A stretch of DNA of 64,000 nt from positions 229,173-293,172 of the forward strand of contig NW_003314272.1 in assembly GCF_000143415.4 (NCBI RefSeq), given 5' to 3'. The stretch comes from Selaginella moellendorffii (taxonomy: Eukaryota; Plantae; Lycopodiophyta). A program made the position numbers and the translations under genes. The notes beneath the pieces are model-generated. The model was given only the letters and a program-made list of their open reading frames with translations, was not told the DNA's origin and did not search any database. This document shows, in pieces, positions 220 through 54,282 of this stretch. Numbering within the stretch: the first letter of the stretch is position 1; every line of letters begins with the position of its first letter.

Positions 220-954
220 ATGTGGCAAATGCTGCGTGAAGAAAGATGCCCTTTCTGGGCAAATGCTGTAAGAGGCAGATGCCGAGCAGATGTATCTCAG
301 GCTAGCGAAGGGGACAAACGAAAGCTAGCTATAAACATGACGGGATGCAAATAGATTACTAGGCTGGTCCTGCGAAAATCAAAAACCATAATTGAAAACA
401 TTGAAAATGCAAAAAGAAAGGTTTATAATATTTTTGAATTTTAAGCAACCAAAGGAATGTAAGTAGGGCATGTGTTTGTAAGTTTAAAAATGCCTCAGCC
501 ATATAAATTCCCAAGTAAATAAAGCTGTTTCTATTTTTGGTACAGGTAAACTTTATAGCGTGTGGGCTCATGCAATTTTGAACCCAAAAATGCACCAAAA
601 GATGCTCGACTAGCATTATTCTTTGAATGGCATGTGGCATTATATTGCCATAAATGGACGTACATACACAGCATAATTATTCCTTTACACGGCGAATAAT
701 CTTGGCGCGGATCGCTGACATGGCATGGCAAAGTTCGAATCACTGACATGGCACAGCTGGATCGAGGCAAGGACATGATGTGACAAAGTTCAACCTCCGA
801 CAGCAAAGTCTAGAAGCTACTCAGTTTGAAATTTGTCAGAGGAATCATAAGATCTGGTTTGTCAGAGGATTTGATGTGACGTTCAAGCGTGTGTTATTTT
901 TGAATTCTCGAACTCATTCCTAGGTCTATCATTTTTGTGCGCCGTGTTCTTGGT

Positions 955-1109
955 TCCGCTGAGCGCAGTGAGCGCTGCTTGTGTAAGCGGCGTTGTGAGC
1001 TGTGGTTTATGCGTCTACAAGCGGTTGCGGCATTGCGAGCGCCATTGCGAGCGGCAGTTTATGCGAGTGGCAGTTTGTGCGAGCGGCGCTACGAGCAGTT
1101 GCGGTGTTG
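955..1109 (+). repeat. Degenerate GC-rich minisatellite (TGCGAGCGGC-like units) running into an assembly gap
   Basis: tgcgagcgcc/tgcgagcggc/tgcgagtggc/tgcgagcggc units; N run starts at 1110. Confidence 0.6.
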
Positions 1110-1801
1110 NNNNNNNNNNNNNNNNNNNNNNNNNNNNNNNNNNNNNNNNNNNNNNNNNNNNNNNNNNNNNNNNNNNNNNNNNNNNNNNNNNNNNNNNNNN
1201 NNNNNNNNNNNNNNNNNNNNNNNNNNNNNNNNNNNNNNNNNNNNNNNNNNNNNNNNNNNNNNNNNNNNNNNNNNNNNNNNNNNNNNNNNNNNNNNNNNNN
1301 NNNNNNNNNNNNNNNNNNNNNNNNNNNNNNNNNNNNNNNNNNNNNNNNNNNNNNNNNNNNNNNNNNNNNNNNNNNNNNNNNNNNNNNNNNNNNNNNNNNN
1401 NNNNNNNNNNNNNNNNNNNNNNNNNNNNNNNNNNNNNNNNNNNNNNNNNNNNNNNNNNNNNNNNNNNNNNNNNNNNNNNNNNNNNNNNNNNNNNNNNNNN
1501 NNNNNNNNNNNNNNNNNNNNNNNNNNNNNNNNNNNNNNNNNNNNNNNNNNNNNNNNNNNNNNNNNNNNNNNNNNNNNNNNNNNNNNNNNNNNNNNNNNNN
1601 NNNNNNNNNNNNNNNNNNNNNNNNNNNNNNNNNNNNNNNNNNNNNNNNNNNNNNNNNNNNNNNNNNNNNNNNNNNNNNNNNNNNNNNNNNNNNNNNNNNN
1701 NNNNNNNNNNNNNNNNNNNNNNNNNNNNNNNNNNNNNNNNNNNNNNNNNNNNNNNNNNNNNNNNNNNNNNNNNNNNNNNNNNNNNNNNNNNNNNNNNNNN
1801 N
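1110..1801. other. Assembly gap (other gaps at 3757-3856 and 25813-25912)
   Basis: Runs of N. Confidence 1.
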
Positions 1802-4339
1802 CTGAGCACGAACCGAAAAGGCAGAAAATGGCGATGGAGGTTCGAATGGTCTCGACAGTTGCTTGTTGCAAGAGGAGGTGCTGTCAACATGCTGATTGGG
1901 ATGCTATTGAAGAGGAGAGAGCAAGATACAAGACATTGTCCTGGAAGGCAGCTCGCAATTTTGTGTATGAGGCATTACGGTCATCTATTGATGCTTCAGA
2001 ACATCAGGTGGGGGGCATGGTCTTCCAGAGGGGTTTGGTCTGCATGAAGGCATGGAGAATCATTTATGGAGTCCCTCGAACCACATTCTACAGAATCAAA
2101 ACTGAGTTCGAGGAACAAAGGGTTCAACAGGCAGTCCATGGGAACGACGGTACGCACAAAACCAGGGGTCATGTTGTATATGGAGAGGCAATCTTCAAGA
2201 GGTTTGTCGAGACATGTAGCGAGCAGCAACCACATAAAACCCGCCTCTTGGAAGATGGAACACGAGACACCCAACGAGTTCTCCCTTCCATGTATACCAA
2301 GGGGGCCATATTGGAAGATGTGAATCGGGAACTCCAGAGTAATGGCTACAGGAAGCTGAGCCAATCTAGATTTAGTAGATTGTGGAGCAACAGGTTCAGG
2401 GATGTGAGTATAGGAAAGTACTCCAGCTTTTCAAAGTGTGACGAGTGCACTGCTATCAAAATGGCTTTGTCGAAGAATTCTTGCAGCGCTCAAGAGCGAG
2501 AGACGTTGGTTAGAAGGCGGCTCGACCACAACATCGAGCAGAGAAGCTGCAGGACTGCATATTATCATAACAGGATTCTCTCCATGGAGAGACCTGACTC
2601 TTACCTCTGCATCATCCACGACAAAATGGATCAGAAAAAGACGTGCTTACCTCGACTCAATCCTGCCCCCAAGGCAATCTCTTCATCCATGCAGCTGCCT
2701 GTGTCTCTGTTTGGCATAATCGCTCATGGGCATGGTGCCCAGAACTATGGGAACTTCTTTGTGCCTCTATGGGGTGGCGGGGGTGCAAACATGATGATTG
2801 CGTCCTTAGCAAAACACTTAAGGTCTCTGCAAAGTGCGCAGACTGAGCTGAACGGCCAACCCTTGCATAAGGCCCTTGTCGATCGAACCCCATACAGGGT
2901 TCAGCTGGAGGAGGAGCAAAGGCTTGCAGTATCGCGTGGGGCCCCATGCCATCCTAGTGAATATGTTGGCCGTCAGATTGTAGGGTTATCACGTGAGGCC
3001 TCATGCCATTACGACGAGGCTGGTCGCCCGGTGAATGCACAGCCTCATCCAAACGAAGCAGAATCTCAAGGAAGTTCTTGCGGCCGATGTGGCCTTCCAC
3101 CCCATCTTCTGCTCCAAACAGACAATGCTGGCAGTGAGAACAAAAACATGTACGTCTTCGCGTACTTGGCGATGCTTGTTGCCAAAGGCATATTTGAAAC
3201 GGTTACACTTGGCTTTCTCATGGTTGGGCACACTCATGAAGACGTCGATGCCATGTTCAGTCACCTGGCAGAGTCCCTCCGGCGATCCAATGTCCTCACC
3301 CTCCCACAACTCTACGATGAATTCCAAAATTGCATCAAAGGCACTGTTGAAGCTGCACTTGTGACAGAGGTTCCAGACTTTAAGGGGTTTGTAAGAGGCT
3401 ACATCAGGGACGGATCCGAAACGCTGATTGGCCACTCCAAGCCTCTTCAGTTTCATTTCAGCATGCGTGACGGTGCTCCAGTGATGAGGTACAAGATGAG
3501 AGAATGGGACACAGTGTGGCTGCCAGTGGATGGCATTGAACTCTTCAAGAGAGATCCCATAATTGGGGAACCTATGATTCCTCAGGGTTCCCCACGGCCG
3601 ATGCACCCGGATGGACTCAAAGACCAGGAAAGTATAGTGGCCGGGATTAGACAGCATATTGCCTTCTGGAAGAGGGGGTTGGTGTTTGGTGGAGAATCCT
3701 ATTTTAAGAGGTGCAAGCCTTTGCTCGAATACTGGGAGAAGATTATATCTGCTATCNNNNNNNNNNNNNNNNNNNNNNNNNNNNNNNNNNNNNNNNNNNN
3801 NNNNNNNNNNNNNNNNNNNNNNNNNNNNNNNNNNNNNNNNNNNNNNNNNNNNNNNNATGCAGTGACAGATAACGATGTTGAGGATCACTATTGTGGGCCG
3901 AGGAACAAGAAGCCGGATTCAGCATTCAATCCAGTACAGGTCTGCAAAGGAATGGTCGTGCTTGTCAGACCCAGTAATAAAAAACAAATGATATGGGTGG
4001 GGCGCTGCATCACTGATGCAGAGGAGGACGCGGAAACTAACTCCTTCAATGTAACTGTGGAGTGGTTCAAGCCAAGTTCCGGATATACGAAGGATTGCCT
4101 AGAAAAGAGATGGGTGCTGAATCCAAGGGATCCCAGCATGAGCATATCGGTGGATAATGTTGTGCATGGTTGGATGCGGAAGCAGAGTGCCACCATCACC
4201 TTGCCAGACCATGCAAGAGATGCAGCAAGAGCATTCATAACCCGGGTTCAAGGTGAGATTCATTAATATTCCTTTACTAAGTTTCTAATGTATTTTATTT
4301 CAAGGTGAACAATCCGAATCTGAATCAGAGGAGGCGTGA
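1802..4339 (+). CDS. DUF7869-type / Sola1-like DD[E/D] transposase with a C-terminal SH3/BAH-like beta domain; 5' end may lie in the gap (first ATG at 1828)
   Basis: Open frame on both sides of the 100-N gap. Motifs KCDEC, HDKMDQ, QTDNAGSENKN, FLMVGHTHEDVDAMFS. Probable terminal intron 4253-4304 gives the C-terminus RVQ|GEQSESESEEA*. Confidence 0.75.
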
Positions 4340-24104: not shown

Positions 24105-26147
24105 CTATTTGTCTAGTGCCACAGAGTTCGCAAGGAGGATATAGCCAGCGGCATCCGCAGGACTGCCGCCACCGTCAAATATCGATTTTGCTTCGTTGTG
24201 GCTGCCACAGGCTCCCAAGAGGCACGACCGATCCAGCGAATCGGGCTCGAACGGCATCGTCTCGGCGAGCTCCCGGGCATCCACAACGTATCCCCCGCGC
24301 GCCAGGAGATCGATCGCGCAGCTAAAGTGCTGCTTCGTGGGACGCTGCTGGAAATCTCGATGGATCGAAACAAATGCAGCGCGCCCTCGGTGTAACTCGC
24401 CCGCATGGATGCACGCCCTCAGCATCGTCACAAAGGAGACGTCGTTCGGAGACACCGCCTCGAGTACCATTGCGTGGAACAGATGTAAGGCCTCGTGTGG
24501 CCTCTGGTTGTGCCCATACGCTGCCATGAGCGCGTTCCACGATACCACGCTGGGCTCCTCGATGCCATCAAAGATCCTCCTGGCATCTTGCAGATGCCCG
24601 TGCTGGGCATATGCCGAGAGCATCGCATTCCGCGTCACAGAGTTTCTTTCGTCCATGGCGTGAAAAAGATACCACGCATCTTCAAGCTGGCCAGCTTGCG
24701 CCACGGCGGACACAACAATCGTCCAGGTGACTAGATTCCGTTCCTCCATTGTGCTAAAGATCCTCTTTGCCTCGCCAAGATGCCCTTGCGAGGCAAAGGC
24801 TGTGATCATTGCATTGATGGCGACGAGATCCCAGCGCGCCATTCGATCAAACATTGATTTCGCCTCTTCCACCCAACCAATCGACGCAAATCCACCCAGA
24901 AGCGTTGTCCACGAGACGAGATTCCTCTCCGGCATTCGATCGAACAGCTCACGGGCCTGCCGGATTTGCCCGCTCTGGGCATACCCGCTAAGCATTGCGT
25001 TCCAGGTGATAAGATCCCGCTTCTGGAAGGAGAATTCGAAGAGGTCCCTGGCTGAGTCCAGCATCCCTGCCTGGGAGAACGCCGCAAGCATAGCATTGCA
25101 GGCGATCAAGCTCCGCCCCTTCATCTCGCAAAACAAGGCTTGGGCCTCTCTAATCTGTCTGCTTTGAGTGTAGGCGACGAGCATCGCCGTCCAGGAGAGA
25201 ACATCCCTCTCAGGCATCGCATCAAAGAGAGATCTCGACTGCGATACTTGTCCGGCATGAGCATAAGCAGAGATCATCGAGTTCCAGCACGCCAGATCCC
25301 GCTGCTGGGCGGAATCAAAGAGCCTCTTCGCATCGCTCACGCATCCGGCATTAGCGTAGGCGGATTGGAGCGCCGTATTGCAGTGGAGATCCCATTCGGG
25401 CATCGTGTCAAAGAGGTTCTTAGCATCCAGCAGATGCCCCAGATGGGCATATGCCGTAAGCATCGAGTTCCACGTCACGAGATTCCTTTCGGCCATGGAA
25501 TCAAACATCCGCTTGGAATCCTGCAATCGGCCGTTTTTGGCAAATCCCCCCAGTAATGCATTCCACGTTACAAGGTTTTGTTCTGGCATCTTGTAAGAAA
25601 ACTCTTTCATCTTATGTATTTGCCCATTTTGGGCATATGCAGTCAGCATGGCATTCCAGGTCACTATGTCTCTCTCGCGCATTTCAGAGAATACTTGCAA
25701 TGATTCTCTAAGATTTCCTTCTTGGGCATATGCGACTAGCATGGTCGTCCACGTCACCAGATCCAGTTGAGGCATCCTGTGTACACCTGCGCTGCCTCTT
25801 CAATATGCCCGTNNNNNNNNNNNNNNNNNNNNNNNNNNNNNNNNNNNNNNNNNNNNNNNNNNNNNNNNNNNNNNNNNNNNNNNNNNNNNNNNNNNNNNNN
25901 NNNNNNNNNNNNGCATGGCATCAAACACTTGGCGGGCTTGCTTGACGGCCCCAAATCTCCCGTAGAGCTGGATCAGTGTGTTCGAGAGCCTCGTGTCGTG
26001 GGCGAAGAAATCCAGCTCCTTGAGCTGGGAGTGAGCCTCTCTCGTCATCGCCAGGCTCTTGCAAGATGCCAGGAGCTGGATGCAATGGTCGCGTTCTTGG
26101 AGCATGGCGGCAAATTGCGGGGCTTCCATTCCTAAATCTTTGTACAT
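24105..26147 (-). CDS. PLS-class pentatricopeptide repeat protein with E-like C-terminus and no DYW; assembly gap and apparent 1-bp frameshift near the N-terminus
   Basis: Many 31-aa S-type repeats (RDLVSWNAMLTAYAQ.G.L..A..LFD.M), SCAIDLLARGG..MPFEPD..LLGAC..H. Confidence 0.9.
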
Positions 26148-37929: not shown

Positions 37930-39006
37930 CTATGAGTCGCTTCGTCTCAAGTAACTCAACAGCGAGTTTCGATTGCAAACGATGACATGGAACAGCTTGT
38001 CCATGTCACGACGCACTCGATCCAGCCCCTCCTCGGCGCTCTTCAAAACAGCCGCTAGCTTTCGTGCTCCATCAGCAATGACGCTGCAACTCTCGCTTTC
38101 CTCCCCAAAATCTGTGACTCCTCCCAACTTGGCCTGGAGCTCTTCCACCACCACCTCCAGAGCAGCAAACTCGACCACCAGCGGAGAAAAGCGAGTGATC
38201 TTGTGCTGCAGCGAGCTCCTCACAAGCTCAAGGAGAGCACGCAACGTCGGCGACCACGCAAAGCTGTCGGGAATCTCCCACTCTGCGATCCCAAGTGTTG
38301 CATTGCTTCCGCTAAACAGCGCCACGACCGCCCCCAGGACGCAAACCGCGACCACCTTTGCCGCATAGAGTGCGCTCAAGAAACTCCGCCTCGCCTTGTG
38401 TGGAAGATCCTTCTCAAATCCCGGACGCTGCTCCAGCATCTCTCGCAAGACGCCGCAGCACGACTTCACTGCGATCCAAGTGGTGCTCGAGCCACCGGGG
38501 GAAGTAAACTCCGCGAGAGCTTTCCTGGCTTTGGCGTACCTCTCCTGCCTTGTGCCGTGGCCGGACTCCAGTGTAGACACCGCGAGATGGAGTAGCAGCA
38601 GCCTGTGCTCCAGATCCCCCACAACCTTCCTCAAGGTGTTTAGAACGTCTAAGAGCCGGCAAGTATCCTCCAGGTACTCCGAGACCCACTGCTCGTCCCC
38701 TTCCGGGAGGGGACACTCCAAGCCGGGGATGATAGACTGTGCCTCGGAGATGGTGGTCGTGACGAGTACCAGCGCTTGGTCCATCCAAGCCAGGCTAAAC
38801 CTCTGCTTGGTCGGTGCCAAGGCCAGCTCCAAAGTTGACAGCCGCTCGGCCAGCATTACGTCGAACTTCGCCGCTCGAGGATCGGACTGGATGGCGGCGG
38901 CGTTGTGGTGGAGTCCATGCTTGGGGGAGTTGTGGAAGTTTAGAGCTTGGCCGATAGTCGAGAACAACGATGGTCCGTGGTAGTGATGGTGATTCCTCGT
39001 TCTCAT
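37930..39006 (-). CDS. BYPASS1/ROH1-like (DUF793) protein
   Basis: FD..LAERL..L, FSLAWMDQAL, WVSEYLEDTCRLLDVLN; intronless CDS with a 5'UTR acceptor near 39017. Confidence 0.85.
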   Translation of the reverse strand: MRTRNHHHYHGPSLFSTIGQALNFHNSPKHGLHHNAAAIQSDPRAAKFDVMLAERLSTLELALAPTKQRFSLAWMDQALVLVTTTISEAQSIIPGLECPLPEGDEQWVSEYLEDTCRLLDVLNTLRKVVGDLEHRLLLLHLAVSTLESGHGTRQERYAKARKALAEFTSPGGSSTTWIAVKSCCGVLREMLEQRPGFEKDLPHKARRSFLSALYAAKVVAVCVLGAVVALFSGSNATLGIAEWEIPDSFAWSPTLRALLELVRSSLQHKITRFSPLVVEFAALEVVVEELQAKLGGVTDFGEESESCSVIADGARKLAAVLKSAEEGLDRVRRDMDKLFHVIVCNRNSLLSYLRRSDS

Positions 39007-39573
39007 GATGCAAGACCTGAAAAGAATGCACATAAGTGATCGAAAGTCAAACGAGAGTGGCTCTAGAGTTACACGAAAGATCACACCGACGGATCATTCC
39101 AAGCTCTATGGGTCTATAGAAAAGGCTAAAAGGAAGAGGAATCGCGCCAGACATTCTGCCCAGAGCAACGATCTCAAGCTCTGGCCGCTGAATTCCAGCA
39201 TCTCGAGCCAGCCCCAATCTTTGAGTGGATCAGTCCTAGCGACTGTAGAAGCCGAGGCGCGAGAATCTAGCTACCTTCTTACGAACGCAAGGGCGATCCT
39301 TCGCTTTAGCTCCTCGCCGAAAATCCTCGCTGAAAATCCTGATCGAGAGAGTAAAGAGCGACGGCGAGACCTAAGAACCTTCCAGAGCGCCACGTCAGCG
39401 CACTAAAAAGATAAATCCCTGTTGCCGTGTGGCGGCCGGATAAACATGCCACGCGGCGGTTAATACACGTGGCGTTGCCTTTTTCGTGCGATCGTGACGG
39501 TTGGAATCGAACGCGGGCGGGATATTTTTGAAAATCGGATTTTAGAGATCTTGCCTGTGAGGCGAGCGCGGCG

Positions 39574-41343: not shown

Positions 41344-42318
41344 ATGCGTCCATCGCTGATCCCCATGGCTCCTGGGAGGCATTCATATCTAGCTGCCGCC
41401 TCATCGTCTCCCCCTGTCCACCAGCAGGATACTTGTATCCCTTGTTCTTCGTCGTCAATCGCATCGTCCTCGCCTTGCTCCTCCTCCTCCTCTTCATCCT
41501 CCTCCTCTCCTCCGCCTCGGCTCATCGCCGCCGCCATGGTCAAGCCGCAATCGTCCTCAAGCGCGTCCTCCGCGATCGCAGGCCCCCAGCTCTCCGCGAT
41601 CTTGCGGCCCCAGCTCAAGCGATCACGTAAAGGTTGCATGAAAGGTAAAGGCGGCCCTGAGAACGCAGCGTGCCAGTACCGTGGAGTCCGCCAGCGGGTG
41701 TGGGGGAAGTGGGTCGCCGAGATCCGGGAGCCCAACTGTGGAGCTCGCATCTGGCTGGGGACGTTTGACACCGCCGTGGAGGCTGCCAGGGCTTACGATC
41801 AAGCCGCCTTGAAGTACTTCGGCGAGAACGCGCGTCTCAATCTCCCTGATTCGCTTCCTCCATGGCCGGCTCTTGTTCCTCCTCCCACCGCCACCACGTC
41901 TCCAGCACCAGTCTCCAAGAGGGCGATCAAGCGAGGACCGGTCGATCGCAAGCTCCTCCCCCCGCCCCGCGCCGCGGGGAGCAGCTCTGGTTCCTCGATC
42001 GTCGGGAGGCCTTTGGTTTCTTCCGTGCCGCCCGCCATCGCCGACCTCGGGGAGCCGATCATGCCGATGGTGCCGATCGCGTTCAACGTTTTTGGGATCT
42101 CCTCGGCCTCCGCGGACGAGGCGCTCCTCAATCTGGCAGCGCCCACCGCCTCCTCGGCCTCGTCTATCCCCAACACCGAGCACAGCGGCAGCGACAATTC
42201 CACGCTCGCATCGCTCAACGCGTATTCCTCCACCGAAGACGACATGGAAGAGGTATGGAAGGAGCTATCCAACGATCAGATCGATGGATTCTCCCTATCT
42301 TCCTGTAGATTCAATTGA
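41344..42318 (+). CDS. DREB2: AP2/ERF transcription factor, DREB2 (A-2) type; exact start ATG uncertain (41344/41365/41536)
   Basis: [14 protein letters not shown] followed by [34 protein letters not shown]. Confidence 0.93.
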
Positions 42319-42452: not shown

Positions 42453-44720
42453 TCATCGCGTTAGATCGCGCGTCGCGGTCGCCACCATCTCCAAAATCTC
42501 GCAAAAGTCCGGCCTGTCCAGGGGATTGCTCGCCCAGCACTGGTGGATCAGGTACTTGAGCAGCGGGAAGCAATCCAGCGGCACAACCGGTGCTGGCATC
42601 GATCGCGTTGTTCTGGATCTACGCGGCGTCTCCTTTTCCTTGCCGATATTTTGATCGGCCGTTGTGTGGCACGAGACGAGCTCGCAAAGGAGCGTCCCAA
42701 AGCTGTAAACGTCCGCCTTGGGAGTAATCGCGGATTTCTCCAAATCAACCTGAATCCCACCAAACATTTTCGTCCGCATCAGTCGCGTAAAAAGCTCTGG
42801 AATTTTTAATTTTTTTTTTCGCTCCACGCTAACCAGATTCAACGGCGTCAATCAATCAATGAACGCTCACTGACTGACCTCGGGTGGCACTGGCCATGAA
42901 GTCTTGTCCTCCTCCTCGCCATCCTTAAAGCTCCTCTCGTCCTTGGTAGGCGATTTGATCGCCCTCGCGATTCTCAGGCCACCAATCACCGCGCAGCCAT
43001 TGTCGTCCAGGAGAATGTTGGAGAGCTTCAAGTTGCTGCCAAGCACCAGAAGAAAAAACAAACAGAGAGAGAGAGAGAGCGCGTCAGGACTGAGGCCAAC
43101 TTGACCAGATCTTTGCAGAAAGGCAAGAAAACAAAGAGCGAATCCATCCCACGCCAAGCACACACAAAAATCACACTTGCCTGTGGACGATCCCGCATTC
43201 GTGCAAGAACTGCATCCCCTCGGCGATGTCGCAGGCCATGCGCAGCACGGATCGCAGCTCGATCTTCTCGCGCCTGTCCACCAGATCGCGCAGCGACCCC
43301 CCGGAGACGAGCTTGGACACCGCCCACAAGTTCCTCCCATCGATCCAGATGCCGCGAATGGGCAAAACATTGGCGTGCGCAAACCCCGACCGCGTGCACA
43401 GCCACAGCACCTCCTCCTGGAGCTCGCGATCGCCATCCCCTGGCGGGTTGATCAGCTCCAGCGCCACAGCCTCGCCGCCAAATCTCGCGCGCGCAGTGGG
43501 TATCGCCTCCTCCTTCTCCAAGCCGCTCATCTTGGATGGATCCAGCGCCCACTGCGAGAGCTCCTCCTTGCCGCTGGCGACGTCTCCCGATACATCGATC
43601 CGGATCCTCGCGCCCGCCACCGCGTCGATGCTCAGTCGGTGTGAGACGAAAGAGATCCGGCTCTCGAGATCCATGTCCGCCGCCACCGCCGCCGCAGTGC
43701 TGGGGATCGATTTGCTTGGGTTGTGGACGAGGATCTGCTGGGATGCCGATGAAGAGGAGGATGATCCATAGAGGCCGAGCGCCAGCCTTCTCAGCCGGGA
43801 TTTCTTGGCCGCCGCCTTGAAGATCTCTTGCATTCGGTCCAGGCGCATGTACTCCCTGGCGCAGTGGACCGATGCCATCCCCAGGAAGAGCGCCTTGCGG
43901 CAGTAGACGCTGGTGTGCGTCACGGGGATCGCCGCGCGCTTGAAAGCCCACGCGATCGAATGCTTGGTGATGGGGACGCCCATCGTCGCGAATGTGACCG
44001 TGAAATCGCTCTCTTGATCCTCCTCCCACGGCGCAGGAGACGCGATCGATGGCGGCGAGCTGGCCATGAAGAGGGATTCATCGCTGGCGTTGCTGGATCG
44101 AGCGGCGGCATTGGCGGCTGTGGCGGATCTTCTTTCTTGGATGATGGCGATGGCGATGGAGCCGCTGTGAGGGCTCATGCGCGCTTGCTCCACCAGGCGG
44201 ATGTGCAAGAAGATCTGATCGCTCCCCAGGCCGGCTTGCGCGTAGCTGCAAAGAAACAAGGAAAGATGTCCGCTTAGCCTTCTAGATCGATCGAGCAAGA
44301 ATGACGAAGAAATATTTCGAGAGGGATCTTGCGATACCTGAGTGGCAGCGATTCGAAGTGGCGCCGGATCATCGAGATGAGCCTCTCCGGCAGCTGGCTC
44401 CCCGGATGCCGCTGCATCAAGCTCTCCACGATCGCATTCCAAGCGGCCTTCTTCTCTTCGCGGCGGATCTTGATGGCGCCGCCGACGCTGCCGCCGCCGC
44501 TGTGGAGATAGGAGCACACAGATCTTTGGAGGCGCTTCCATCTGCCGCCGCCATCGCCGCTTCCGCGATTCTTGCCGCCGAGATTCGAGGCGGCGCCCGG
44601 TGACAGTAGCGGGCAATCGTCGACCGCGAAGAGCATGCGATGATCCAGCATTCCGGAATCATCCCCCCAGCTGATCTTGGCGCTGTGGCTGTGGCAGCTC
44701 CAGCAATCGACCCTGGCCAT
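42453..44720 (-). CDS. Raf-like kinase-fold protein with N-terminal ACT-like region (At5g58520/At5g07140-like); predicted pseudokinase
   Basis: RHFESLPLRY, DQIFLHIRLVEQA, FTVTFA..; kinase lobe with AVALE, HSNLKLSNILL, IGGL, PPE, KADVYSFG, CWASNPLDRPDF. Confidence 0.8.
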
Positions 44721-47729: not shown

Positions 47730-48505
47730 ATGGTTGTGGCGATGGCGCTCCAGGCATCGCCGACGCAGGCCTCGAGCGTGAATGCGGTGCGCCTGGGATT
47801 CGTGGCAGGATCGTCGCCTCCCGGGAAATGTAGATTAGGGTTGGCGAGGAATCGGCAACGAGGAGCTGGGTCTCTGGTGGTGAGGGCGGCGATCTTGGAA
47901 GCCCCCGGCGTGGGCGTGGAGCGCGTCGACATGAGCGATTTCGTGAAGGAGGCCATGCCCGGAGGGATTGCCGCGCAGGACCTCTTGGGCACTGGGCGGA
48001 GGAAGCGAGCGATTGCCAGGGTTTGCCTGGTCGAAGGCACCGGACAGTATGTTATCAACAATAGGACTGCCCAGGTATGAGAATCCTCCTCTTTAGTTTG
48101 CAAGGAGGAGAAGAAGATAGAGATTGTTCTCTAGTTTGCATGGAGAAAAAGAAGATAGAGATTGTTCTTCAGAAGAAGAAGATAACCGAGCTGACAAGCT
48201 TCTCTTTTGATGGCCAGGAGTACTTGCAAGGAAATCCATTGTGGCTTTTCCACGTAAAGCTTCCACTCCGGAGCCTCGGCTTCGAAGGAAAGTACGACAC
48301 CATCGTCAAAGCGCACGGTGGTGGTCTCTCGGGCCAAGCGCAGGCAATCCGGCTGGGGATCTCGCGATGCCTTCTCAAGATCAACGAGTCCCACCGCCAG
48401 CCATTGAGGAAGCTGGGATTCTTGACAAGAGACCCGCGTAAGGTGGAGAGGAAGAAGGCTGGCAAGCACAAGGCAAGGAAGTCTCCTCAGTACTCCAAGC
48501 GTTGA
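47730..48505 (+). CDS. PRPS9: Plastid 30S ribosomal protein S9 with transit peptide
   Basis: [53 protein letters not shown]; one intron about 48076-48217. Confidence 0.96.
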
Positions 48506-48621
48506 GACGTAAAGCAAAAGCATACCTTTCTTGGTCTCTTCCTCCCTTTGCAATGGATGGATTTGCAGCTCCAGCTTCTTGTGTGGTGCTGCTCAAGAAG
48601 AAACGCTGTTCTATAAGTTCC

Positions 48622-51600
48622 TCATTCTGTAACGCGCCCGGTTTGATCCGTCTCGCTGCTCGCCAGTGATTCATTGCTCGCCTCCGTGACCAGCTTGTGC
48701 TGTGGATAGAGCCGAACGAAGTGAGCACCTATCCGTGAGACATTGTGTCGAAGTATGGAGAGGAACTGCGTCTCCCAATCTCGACCTGGGATGTCTTTGT
48801 TCTCTTCGGGTGTAGCCTGACAACTCTATCGGTCAGTGTGGAAGTTTGGCTGAAAGCAAGAGTACCTGGTGAGCGGAGTTGGTTTCGGAAGGATTTTTGG
48901 CTGAAGCTAGCTCGTTGTGCATGCACCGCCAGATTATCAGCAGCAGTGTCGTCACGTCTTCGGTGTTGATTAGCGCGATTATCTCCCCACATGACGCGAG
49001 AGGTTGCGGAAGCCAGCGAGCGGACGTGACGAGCTGAATGATGTTGAAGAGCTGCATTCTGTCCTTGTCCTGGAGAAAACCAAAACGTTTAGAGCGTCGA
49101 GTGAGAGAAGGTTTTCTTCAAGTTAAGCTGACCGCGGAAGCAGTTTGCTGACGGCGAAATGCTCCATACCAGTGCGAAATAGAGTCCGCCAGTAAAGCAC
49201 GGACAAACTCTGCACAGGCTTCGAGCTGTCTAGCTTGTCCGTGTTCCATGACGAGCTCGAGCACCTACAGAAGTTCAATTCTTAGCGTGGCAGAATCAAG
49301 CAAGCTCTCCAACCTTGAAAAGGAGCGGGTTTTGATGAAAGCATTCGGTGAGGAACGTGTGTCGAACAAAAGCTACATGTTTTGGAAGAACCTGGCAAAA
49401 GAGGAAAACAGTTTCACACAAATAAGATATAAACTTTGAATACACGCACCTCCTCATACTGTTCCATCGTGATAGAGATCTCATGTGGTGTTTCCAGTCG
49501 ATCAACCAGCAGTTTTTCTAGGATTTCAACTGGATGGCACGGCCACGCTTCTAGCTTTTCTTGATGTCGTGCAATAGATTTTCTGAAAGATTGCTCTAAG
49601 AGACTGCAAATTTCGGTGAAAGTCGGATTTAGAGCTTCAGTTCTCTTAGAGTCGTTTCTGCTCTCCATGCTATGAGTGATACCTGCCAGGAATACCATGC
49701 TAAGAAAACACAAAAATACAAACAGACAATGTAGTCTACCTGAACCTTTACTACAATCATCCAACTGCCGCTGCTTTGAAAATATGAACTCCATCCTTCC
49801 GTAGCGATCAACATTTCCAGCCGCTAGTGCGATCGTGGTTTGAAATCCTGGCTTTGACATCAGATGCTCCACCTTTGAGATATCAACTGTAAGAAAGAGT
49901 GTTATTGATATACACCAAAACGTCCAGGTGCAAGTGAAATGCAAATGCAAGATAGTTTCATGCTGTACTCACGCACTGTTTGAAGACATTCCAAGTTGCC
50001 TCTTAATGCCAGCTTCAAAGGAGAAATTGAGTAGGATGGTCACCAGCTGCAGCAGTAGACAAGTCAAAACACATTCTATAAGATAACTTGTTCGTACCAA
50101 ATTAAATAGCGCAAAGGAAAAAGAACCCAGGTGAGCTATGATTCTTCTCAAGATTGCAGCTTCTCGTAAGAAAATCCATCGGCTATCAGTAAGCGTATAG
50201 TCAGAAAAATTGTCCATCTTTTTTAGACGATAAAACAGCAATCCTAGTGCTCCCTGCACGCACACGTAAATTTACCGCAGCTTTGACCCATCACAAACCT
50301 TAAGGTGTCGAGAAAGCTCTTCAGATGACATAGTTCCTTCCATGGCAAGAGACTGAAGAACACCCAGCGTATGCAAGGAGCTTTCGTCGTTGTCAGCTCT
50401 CTGCAATAACGCTAGAATCCCCAGCCATTTTCCATTCAATGCGTCGCATAAGTTTTTCCGTGAAGACCTCCAAGCAGTTCCGACAACATGCCGGCTCCAA
50501 AAGGAAGGATTCAGAAGTTGACGGATTGCCAAAATTCGCACCAATACCTACGCAGCGGATTAGTAAGTTAGAACTTTCCAAGTGAAGAAAAGCAAGTACC
50601 TGAGCGCTATTACAGACGTGAAGCTGGTCGACAACCTTCTTAGCCCAAAGTGTGAGGATCGCAGGATCCTTGCCCATAACTCCAAGCATCTGTGTTAGCG
50701 TTACAAAGATTGCCAAAACTTCCGCATTTCCGCCGTGTGCACAAGCTTGTACCAGAAACTCAGTGGCTGCTTCATTATCGGATCCCAGTAGCGTAATCTG
50801 GCACGTCTGTACCAGAGCATCCCTCGCATAGACAGGATCCGACTGACAGCTCGCCGATGTTCTAGAAAAGATATTGTTCCAGAGTCTTTGCGTGTTCTGC
50901 ACCAGACTTTGCAGGAAGGAACTGCTGACTGAATTTCCTGGAGCGTTATAACTATGAGCAACGTTCAGCTCCAAAAACTTAAGCATACCTGCTGCTTCCA
51001 TCATAACAAAAGACGATAATCTCTTGTTCAACCACTCCAGTAATGCGGGATCGACTTTGCTGAGAAGCAAAACTATATCAGCAGCAACAGGCGACAGCTG
51101 CTCGAAATGCTTGATTATGAGCACGGAAAGCCACGCCCTGGTATGACATCCGTCTAGAGCAGGCTTATACTCCTATAAAATACAGTGAGAAACAAAAATA
51201 GGCAGCACGGTTAATCGCATACCAATCTGCTTGTCCAGAAGACTGGCAAAAAAACATGCCTGAAATTCGCAGCCTTCCAAAACTTTTCCAGGGACTCAAG
51301 CCCGACACTCGTCACCAGCGCGGTTGCTACGGCCGCGAGGAAGTTCGGACAGAGTGCCGACTGCACAGCCCATGCATGCATCTTGTACTGAAACTCACTC
51401 CCATCGTCATTTTGCATCAAAAAGATCACTGCCGGTACTACCAACTCTGGTACCCTGCACAGAGTGAAACTTAGTCTAGCAAAGATATGAAACCCCATAC
51501 CCTCTTACCTTGAGGCAGCAAATTCAAGAATCCCTGCTTGCTTGACGTAAGGAACGATGGACGCATCCTTCGATTTGTATCCTTTCACAAGGACGTCGTG

Positions 51601-52215
51601 CATAAGTGACTGGAGAAAATTTTCTGGCGCCGCGGCTGTGAGATACGCCAGCAGCCAATCGAGCTCCGGGAGCTCGATCAAATTCTCGTCACGGCTTGTC
51701 GGATTGGAGCACAAGACCTCTCTAACCATCACCCAATGTAACCATAGATAGTTAACGCTGCCGTCAGCACCTCCTTCTTCTGGAGACTGATCTAGGCTCA
51801 AGAGGAGACACTGGCTGACAAAGGCAACCAAGGCTGTGGCGTCCAACGATCGCATATTGGATGAAACACGCTCGGCCATCCAGTTTCCAATCTCGCCACA
51901 CTCCACCATCTTGAGAAATCCCTGCAAACTCCACCTAGAGGTAGAATCCAGCCTCGGAATCTTGCTGCTTGGATTAGCCAGAGGGGACTCCGAGACTCTC
52001 CTCTTGCCGCTGCTGCTACTCGAAGCCTCATAACCAGCCGCATTCTCGACGGCTTCACGCGATTCCACCCTGCCACTGCCGCTGCACTGAATTCGAGCCA
52101 GCATTTGCATACCCCATCGCAGCGCCTCGCGCGTCGCCCGTGGATCGGTGGCATCTAGTTCCAGCGCCTCGAGTCGCGCCTGGCATTGCGACCCAATTTC
52201 TCCCTCCTCCTCCAT
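48622..52215 (-). CDS. INTS5: Probable Integrator complex subunit 5 homolog (multi-exon, alpha-solenoid)
   Basis: N-terminal [25 protein letters not shown]...P, GILEFAASR, ALCPNFLAAVATALV and C-terminal LPQPLASCGEII..VTTLLLIIW, FLSILRHNVSRIG, colinear with recalled human INTS5 segments. Confidence 0.8.
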
Positions 52216-52764
52216 AAACCCTAGAAAGAATATTCTCCAACCCGATAACAAAGTTACTCTTTTCAAACGCCATGCCACGTCATCAATCCGGCGGCATCGT
52301 CTGGACCAACGGCTCTTTTGCGTACGGACTGAGGGCACGTGGCGCCGCGCGAGTGGCTCCCGCTCGCGCTTGTCCGCGCCCGTATGGGGGAATGCGAGGC
52401 GTCTTGGAGCCCAAAAAAAGAAAAAAGAAGTCGTAGGTGTTAGCTCGCTCTACTGTGTTGTTATTTTGCGCTGGCTATGGCAGCTTTGTTTTTACCTCTC
52501 CGCTTTAGGGCTCCTCGCGCGCGTCCTCCTAGGGCTTAGCTTCTCCCGCGGCGATGGTGTGAAACGGTGCCGCATTGGAGCTTCAGAGGCAATGCGGGTG
52601 AAATGCCGGGGGCGCCGTGAGATTGGTACGTGTTTTCTCGAGCTCCACTGGAAGCAGGGATTTCGAAGAGCGGAGCAGGGATTTTGACGAGATCGTCAGC
52701 TCCGGGGCGCTGGAATCTGGCACCTTTACGGCAGAAAGCAAGGGAAGTGGGAGGAGGAGCTAAG

Positions 52765-54282
52765 ATGATGGAGGGCGGGCAGAGAGGCGCCCTAGTGGTG
52801 TTTAGCAGCTCGCCATCGCCGCTCCCATCGCTGCAGCAGTGCTTGTCGCCGCTGCCACTCGACGCCAAGCTTGGAACTCCGGACGCCAGCGCCACGAACT
52901 TCCAGCCCTGTTCGGTGGCTCTCGCCCCGCCGCCGCTGCCAGCGCCGACTTTTCCATTCGCTCTCGCGGATTCCAAGTCCCTGGGAGCAGCGCCGCTCGC
53001 GATGGAGCCACCGCTGGTCGCGCTCAACGATCCAGCGGTGGCGGGCGGCGTTGGGAATGGCAGCGCCACCGTGACCGAGGCGGAGATGGAAGTGGAGGAG
53101 GATAAGAAGCAGCGGGACAGGGAGCACAAGAAAAGATCGAAGAACTGGACGAGGCCCGAGACGCTCAAGCTCATCCGGCTGAGGACGGAGCTGGAGCCGC
53201 GGTTTGCGAGGACGGGAAGGAAGACGGAGCTGTGGGACGAGATCGCGGAGTCGCTCCAGAGGGAGCGATTCTGCCGGGACGCGCAGCAGTGCCGGGACAA
53301 GTGGGAGAAGCTCACCGCCGGGTACAAGGAAGTCCGGGACGGTGTCAAGGAGAGGGAAGATAATCCTTTCTACGACGAGCTCTACCCGCTTCTCTCCGGG
53401 AAGCTCATCAAGAAGGCCGCCAGCACCACTGGCAAGGAAAAAGAGATTTTTGGGATGGACAGTGGTGGCGAGGCTCAGCTTCCCGAAGGTGGCGGTGGTG
53501 GTGGCGGCGGTGGTGTCTTGTTTAAAGATGTGCTCGACTTTGAGTCGGGGTCGAGGGGCGGAGACAAGGCCACGACCAGGGACGAGGAGGAGGAAGACTT
53601 GGAAGGGAGGCCTCCGACTGCGAAGAAGCGGCGGAGGGTGCCAAACAAGTATGTCGCGGTGACGGACCTGCTAGCGGTGCAAAGCCTGCTCGAGACGGTC
53701 CTGGCGAGGCAGCAGAGATTCTTCCGGGACGTGCTCGAGGCGATGGAGCGGAAGGAGCAGCAGCGCGAGCAGCTCCGGCTGGAGAAGGAGGAGAAGTGGC
53801 GGGCCGAGGAGAGAGCCCAGCGGCTCGTCTTTAACAACGCGATGGTGGCGCTCACGCAGAAGCTCGTTGGGGAGAGGCTGGGTGTGCCGTCGGAGAGCCT
53901 GATGGTGTTCCCGCAAAGCCCCGACGGTGGCGGAGCTCATCAAGGCGGCGGCGGCAGTGGCGGGGGCCCGAAGAAGCGGAGCAAGAACTGGAAGCGGACC
54001 GAGGTTCTCCAGCTGATCAAGCTCCGGGGGGAGATGGAGAACAAGTTCACCAAGAGCACCCGGAGAGCCGCGCTGTGGGACGAGGTGGCCGACTTGCTCA
54101 AGGCGCAGGGGATCAAGCGGGACGGGAAGCAGTGCCGCGAGAAGTGGGACAAGCTCATGGCCGAGTACAAGGACGTTGCCGACGGCAAGCGCGAGCGAGG
54201 AGAGAGCCACTACTTTGCGGAGCTGACGGCCATCGTCACCAAGCCACCGGAAGACTTTGCTGGTGGGAAGAACGTAACGTGA
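52765..54282 (+). CDS. Trihelix transcription factor, GT-2 clade (two trihelix domains plus central coiled coil)
   Basis: WTRPETLKLIRLR..LWDEIA..RDAQQCRDKWEKL; ERKEQQR..EEKWRAEE; WKRTEVLQLIKLR..QCREKWDKL. Confidence 0.93.
   Translation: MMEGGQRGALVVFSSSPSPLPSLQQCLSPLPLDAKLGTPDASATNFQPCSVALAPPPLPAPTFPFALADSKSLGAAPLAMEPPLVALNDPAVAGGVGNGSATVTEAEMEVEEDKKQRDREHKKRSKNWTRPETLKLIRLRTELEPRFARTGRKTELWDEIAESLQRERFCRDAQQCRDKWEKLTAGYKEVRDGVKEREDNPFYDELYPLLSGKLIKKAASTTGKEKEIFGMDSGGEAQLPEGGGGGGGGGVLFKDVLDFESGSRGGDKATTRDEEEEDLEGRPPTAKKRRRVPNKYVAVTDLLAVQSLLETVLARQQRFFRDVLEAMERKEQQREQLRLEKEEKWRAEERAQRLVFNNAMVALTQKLVGERLGVPSESLMVFPQSPDGGGAHQGGGGSGGGPKKRSKNWKRTEVLQLIKLRGEMENKFTKSTRRAALWDEVADLLKAQGIKRDGKQCREKWDKLMAEYKDVADGKRERGESHYFAELTAIVTKPPEDFAGGKNVT

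Follow-up and report, generated by a model that had tools for sequence, protein, structure and literature searches.

In the human Integrator complex, the subunits INTS5 and INTS8 form the shoulder, which is bound by the backbone (INTS1/2/7/12) as well as by the phosphatase module (INTS6-PP2A), and INTS15 binds INTS5, thereby tethering the arm module (bioRxiv 10.1101/2024.01.30.577955). In plants, just one counterpart has been characterised by experiment, the DSP1 complex of Arabidopsis, which processes the 3' ends of small nuclear RNAs (snRNAs). It consists of DSP1 (INTS7-like), DSP2 (INTS3-like), DSP3 (INTS4-like), DSP4 (INTS9-like) and CPSF73-I; no INTS5- or INTS8-like subunit was reported for it (PMC5079582, PMC10533338). 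In our study a window of 64,000 nucleotides (nt) of the lycophyte Selaginella moellendorffii (contig NW_003314272.1, positions 229,173 to 293,172) was analysed, in which a preliminary description had proposed a full-length multi-exon INTS5 gene at positions 48622-52215 and had given the same background on the human shoulder and the reduced Arabidopsis complex. Sequence, profile, structure and RNA data bore the proposal out. Taken together, the gene is with high confidence best explained as the S. moellendorffii INTS5 orthologue, an expressed and vertically inherited all-helical solenoid under purifying selection, which would serve as a scaffold of an Integrator-like complex.

Reviews continue to describe Integrator as specific to metazoans (PMC9006982; bioRxiv 10.1101/2023.03.05.531184), and plant reviews mention only a 'smaller version' of it, in Arabidopsis (PMC10533338). 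Our literature search found no paper on INTS5 in any plant.

Assignment of the Selaginella protein to INTS5

The product of 974 amino acids (aa) is 100% identical to XP_024529648.1 (P0002 in our set), the 'uncharacterized protein LOC112345984' of S. moellendorffii, and the gene is already annotated in RefSeq without a functional name. A separate locus on another scaffold encodes XP_024519499.1 (P0001) with 97.5% identity, which we take for the copy of the other haplotype. For both proteins a renaming from 'uncharacterized protein' to INTS5-like would be possible.

Of the two Pfam models named in the preliminary description, INTS5_C (PF14838) was found well above its cut-off of 27 bits and INTS5_N (PF14837) was not found. 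INTS5_C matched aa 782-938 of P0002 with 51.8 bits (E 7.8e-14) and P0001 with 55.4 bits, the matched part being confined to the last quarter of the model (positions 545-702 of 703; 48733..49364 on the minus strand, introns included). When the exons were scanned separately, exon 12 alone matched INTS5_C (E 3.3e-4) and seven of the eight pieces gave nothing, indicating that single exons are too short for classification.

A phmmer search of the PDB sequences with the single protein yielded no INTS5 match; a profile was needed. Profile A1, built from 11 plant relatives, identified human INTS5 (7CUN chain E) among 177,635 distinct PDB sequences with an E value of 1.8e-4, in three collinear segments. 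This was the sole significant match, the next one having an E value of 0.52. Profile A2 (13 sequences) again yielded INTS5 (E 0.0033) as the sole match at E <=1.

The comparison of a predicted structure with solved ones, as proposed in the preliminary description, pointed to the same family. The AlphaFold2 model of the Selaginella protein has a predicted template-modelling score (pTM) of 0.57. Human INTS5 chains made up its top seven Foldseek matches (E 1.8e-9 to 1.7e-6, template-modelling (TM) score 0.42-0.60, 752-996 alignment columns), followed by matches with an E value of about 1e-3 and a TM score of at most 0.27. Thus, in the predicted model, the full-length helical-solenoid fold superposes on solved INTS5, clear of other repeat proteins. 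Compared to human INTS5, the plant protein is predicted to contain an additional disordered serine-rich linker (aa 47-92) and a long loop modelled with low confidence (aa 641-712). In the ESM Atlas, the eight clusters nearest by language-model features were all animal INTS5, the three listed with scores scoring about 0.93-0.94. Pfam, profile, structure and language-model features jointly place the protein, along its whole length, in the INTS5 family. With an E value of 7.8e-14 for INTS5_C, a sole significant PDB match and seven top structural matches, the likeness exceeds chance.

Six segments of the protein had been aligned with human INTS5 in the preliminary description. All six are present in the plant protein in the order given (aa 126-146, 183-192, 228-236, 269-283, 862-889 and 930-940). 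On the human side, four pairs were reproduced by HMMER, namely PHFDWVVAHI, GILGHLASR, AVMSPALLGTVSGELV and the LP..LG/LLLSVW block; the first segment (ATALVAF...) was in none of the alignments displayed. The wording LPPPLG given for the last reproduced block was incorrect, the actual human sequence being LPPALGNMHEVF. The sixth segment (aa 930-940) falls within the INTS5_C match, which extends to profile position 702 of 703.

The call as INTS5 is therefore confirmed. It adds a member to a known family and is no discovery of kind, because PF14838 is already precomputed on P0001 and a moss relative bears a UniRef name taken from the INTS5 C-terminal domain; the novelty implied before is smaller to this extent.

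Gene structure, transcription and selection

The window contains a single gene between 48622 and 52215, located on the minus strand. Its start codon ATG (52215-52213) and stop codon TGA (48624-48622, reverse-strand reading) coincide exactly with the limits proposed earlier. The gene model comprises 13 exons with GT-AG introns of 45-90 nt throughout and gives a stop-free translation of 974 aa. Transcription was assessed by placing on 48500-52400 the Logan contigs of four runs, each from a different study. Contigs from the four runs lacked all 12 introns, exactly at the junctions of the model, each skipped piece being CT..AC on the plus strand and hence GT..AG on the minus strand. Since intron-less contigs must come from spliced RNA, they show that the gene is transcribed and that its splicing follows the model.

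All exons lie on the minus strand. Exon 1 (51509..52215, aa 1-236; junction 51453/51508 in three runs) encodes two N-terminal helices, the disordered serine-rich linker and the first three of the six segments mentioned above. Exon 2 (51223..51454, aa 236-313) contains ALCPNFLAAVATALV and, like exon 4 (50600..50937, aa 375-487), exon 6 (50098..50253, aa 571-622) and exon 11 (49133..49264, aa 799-842), is defined by the model and by RNA-contig junctions. Exon 3 (50989..51172, aa 314-375) is followed by a 51-nt intron (50937-50989), which was spliced out in all four runs, and exon 5 (50299..50547, aa 488-570) adjoins a 52-nt intron confirmed by three runs. Exon 7 (49977..50046, aa 623-646) has a weak donor, A/GTGCGT (the slash marking the splice site), and a 90-nt intron seen in three runs. 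Model, predicted structure and RNA contigs agree on exon 8 (49740..49886, aa 646-695), located within the low-confidence loop, and model and RNA contigs on exon 9 (49450..49682, aa 695-772), which ends with the TPHE...MEQYEE motif invariant in plants. Exon 10 (49314..49391, aa 773-798) holds the start of the INTS5_C match, exon 12 (48866..49069, aa 843-910) contains WLPQPLASCGEII...LLLIIW, and exon 13 (48622..48816, aa 911-974 plus stop) contains SILRHNVSRIG; exons 10 and 13 are supported by model, Pfam and RNA contigs.

All 12 introns are very short, 11 of them having 45-63 nt, and it is for this reason that in-frame read-throughs of introns occur in the raw list of open reading frames. An alternative splice model with a 940-aa open frame, using a 199-nt intron 3, retaining the 51-nt intron in exon 3 and using another donor for exon 8, was ruled out, the 13-exon model being identical to the RefSeq protein and matching the RNA contigs. 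The 940-aa model also omitted the first 147 nt of exon 5, at which the 52-nt intron was confirmed.

Two donors located 4 nt apart (49973-49977, minus strand) were detected for intron 7. Three runs use A/GTGCGT and keep the frame, and run X8 splices at GTGC/GTGAGT, 4 nt downstream (joint 49886/49973, 86 nt skipped). Exon 7 is thereby extended by four bases (49973..49976), and the shifted frame runs into a stop at once. This form may be an unproductive isoform targeted for decay or may reflect a haplotype difference.

The contigs carried 29 single-base variants, all exonic, with 15 synonymous and 14 nonsynonymous changes. The crude ratio of nonsynonymous to synonymous polymorphism (pN/pS) of 0.28 is consistent with purifying selection on the gene.

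Relatives in land plants and the proposed role

With the C-terminal 234 aa as query, we found relatives in the liverworts Calypogeia, Riccia and two Marchantia species, in the mosses Sphagnum, Ceratodon and Physcomitrium, and in the lycophyte Diphasiastrum, as well as the transcript P0010. Used as a query, P0010 led to two further proteins of the fern clade, one of them from the fern Psilotum nudum. Land-plant proteins such as MPTK1_4g16060 of Marchantia polymorpha, KC19_11G062900 of Ceratodon purpureus, whose UniRef name starts 'Integrator complex subunit 5 C', and EP00249_P023254 of Psilotum nudum belong to the same orthologous group as the Selaginella protein. The plant relatives share 41-46% identity with it over the C-terminal 230 aa, and the motifs TPHE, EQYEE..PK and WLPQPLA are invariant among them. 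Bryophyte and fern proteins are longer (1046-1320 aa compared to 974 aa in Selaginella) due to longer inserts, and most bryophyte members, scoring 16.5-23.7 bits, stay just under the INTS5_C cut-off that the Selaginella protein clearly exceeds. In the clade grouping with Psilotum the Pfam results were mixed: P0010 passes INTS5_C with 50.7 bits, but P0028 and P0029 (Psilotum) have no INTS5 match, indicating that Pfam alone under-reports the family in ferns. A 3241-nt Logan contig (L001, SRR32617117) is listed with these three members of the clade.

In a maximum-likelihood tree, ferns, lycophytes and bryophytes form three clades, and mosses and liverworts are each monophyletic. The tree agrees with the species tree, each species having one copy, in line with vertical descent within land plants.

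Several results weigh against the assignment and the role derived from it. Human INTS5 (7CUN chain E, 8RBX chain e, 9EOF chain G) and the Selaginella protein share only 12-15% identity. INTS5_N gave no match at E <=0.1 in P0001, P0002 or the exon pieces, the best score in any plant relative being that of Ceratodon with an E value of 0.074. This weakens the sequence support for the N-terminus without contradicting the structural match, INTS5_N being kept as a separate model in Pfam. Furthermore, when the 243-aa central exon was compared exhaustively by phmmer with 1.84 billion representatives, it matched Selaginella only, which shows how quickly the middle of the protein diverges. Finally, the Arabidopsis 'smaller version' of Integrator (DSP1-4 and CPSF73-I; PMC5079582, PMC10533338), the sole characterised plant complex found in the literature, comprises five subunits, INTS5 not being among them.

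These observations could alternatively mean that the protein is a true INTS5 descendant working outside any Integrator-PP2A assembly, either as a repurposed scaffold of another nuclear complex or as a drifting remnant of a partly dismantled one. The missing INTS5_N match, the central region unrecognisable beyond Selaginella, the five-subunit Arabidopsis complex and the fast evolution (branch lengths of 1.3-1.7 changes per site to Selaginella and Diphasiastrum) would fit such a history. However, four major plant lineages have kept a single copy for over 400 million years, the C-terminal motifs show no variation, pN/pS is about 0.28 and the fold is still INTS5-like from end to end, and we consider this alternative unlikely. 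A generic helical repeat protein of the HEAT/ARM type, resembling INTS5 by convergence or chance, is highly improbable; the likeness exceeds chance, as described above. The N-terminal third alone does not tell INTS5 apart from other helical repeats, and ESM Atlas shape searches returned generic repeat proteins only. A contaminant or horizontal transfer from an animal or protist might be considered as INTS5 is usually described as metazoan (PMC9006982; bioRxiv 10.1101/2023.03.05.531184), but is refuted by the plant-gene context (a trihelix GT factor and organellar rpS9 as direct neighbours, PPR and AP2 genes farther away) and by the land-plant orthologues reproducing the species tree, and it also disagrees with introns of 45-90 nt, a size typical for Selaginella, and with the presence in two haplotypes.

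For the INTS5 orthologue a role can be proposed from the human complex. By this analogy the plant protein would be a non-catalytic scaffold, forming together with an INTS8-like partner the shoulder of an Integrator-like complex. Such a shoulder would connect the phosphatase module (INTS6-PP2A), and possibly an arm module, with the backbone (INTS1/2/7), and the complex might then help to cleave and terminate RNA polymerase II transcripts, e.g. snRNAs, during transcription. As the whole solenoid and the most conserved C-terminal motifs are kept, the same scaffold role is most likely. Our data demonstrate the structure and expression of the gene, its family membership, the match of the full-length fold and the phyletic spread; complex membership, partners and the PP2A link of plant INTS5 are only inferred, by comparison with human Integrator. 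Most plausibly, a counterpart of the DSP1 complex would be the assembly that the Selaginella protein joins.

No relative from seed plants or hornworts appeared in any search made, and these searches were demonstrably insensitive. In a word-seeded search, a fern query did not recover the Selaginella or bryophyte proteins, though the reverse search linked them; this type of search is therefore not reciprocal and, as the protein also evolves fast, the absence from seed plants is unproven. Profile A1, run against a collection of 5.8 billion sequences, was swamped by 8000 candidates and returned only the query's own cluster. A feature search of the ESM Atlas found no plant cluster with at least 50 members near the query, which is mildly suggestive at most, and its searches by 'unnamed cluster' and by C-terminal features gave no plant lead. 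The phyletic pattern (present in bryophytes, lycophytes and ferns, not seen in seed plants) is a modest, testable lead and not a result.

The preliminary description had suggested that an animal-like Integrator-PP2A module is kept in this lineage and reduced in angiosperms. This may be so; it fits the phyletic pattern but is not established. Tentatively, and with some doubt on our side, INTS5 and a PP2A-coupling shoulder can be placed in the land-plant ancestor, with bryophytes, lycophytes and ferns retaining INTS5 and seed plants having lost it or changed it past recognition. If true, the five-subunit DSP complex of Arabidopsis would have arisen by reduction, and an animal-like plant Integrator-PP2A would best be studied in Marchantia, Physcomitrium or Selaginella. 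An expressed, selected, full-length INTS5 in lycophytes, bryophytes and ferns shows a structural subunit outside the cleavage core to be older than the split of plants and animals, raising the question of whether non-seed plants have a fuller Integrator, perhaps coupled to a phosphatase, that was trimmed in seed plants. The groups in which INTS5 was found here are also the land plants with swimming sperm. Integrator is reportedly needed for ciliogenesis in animals; a tie between the two would be pure speculation.

Neighbouring genes in the window

An organellar-type ribosomal protein S9 is encoded by a two-exon gene (47730-48505, plus strand; Pfam Ribosomal_S9, E 3e-31) that is convergent with the INTS5 gene, the distance between the stop codons being no more than about 117 bp. 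In run X5, one RNA contig extends beyond 48500 toward the S9 gene, so that the 3' ends of both genes may overlap. A scan for bacterial promoters and terminators at the 3' end of the INTS5 gene, a method irrelevant to a eukaryotic gene, gave nothing. On the other side lies a 550-aa open frame (52630-54282, plus strand) for a trihelix protein (GT-factor), in which Myb_DNA-bind_4 was matched twice (E 4.8e-39). Its transcription is divergent from that of the INTS5 gene with only about 415 bp between the start codons, so that the two genes may share a promoter region.

Farther away, the window contains genes for a pentatricopeptide repeat (PPR) protein (24105-25775, minus strand), a ROH1-like protein (37930-39084, minus strand) and an AP2-domain factor (41344-42318, plus strand), as well as a receptor-like kinase fragment with the kinase domain (43171-44616, minus strand). 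A 1109-aa open frame (937-4266, plus strand) strongly matches DUF7869 (E 3.1e-42) and is possibly a transposon-derived gene; the first 2 kb of this stretch have a G+C content of only 28%.

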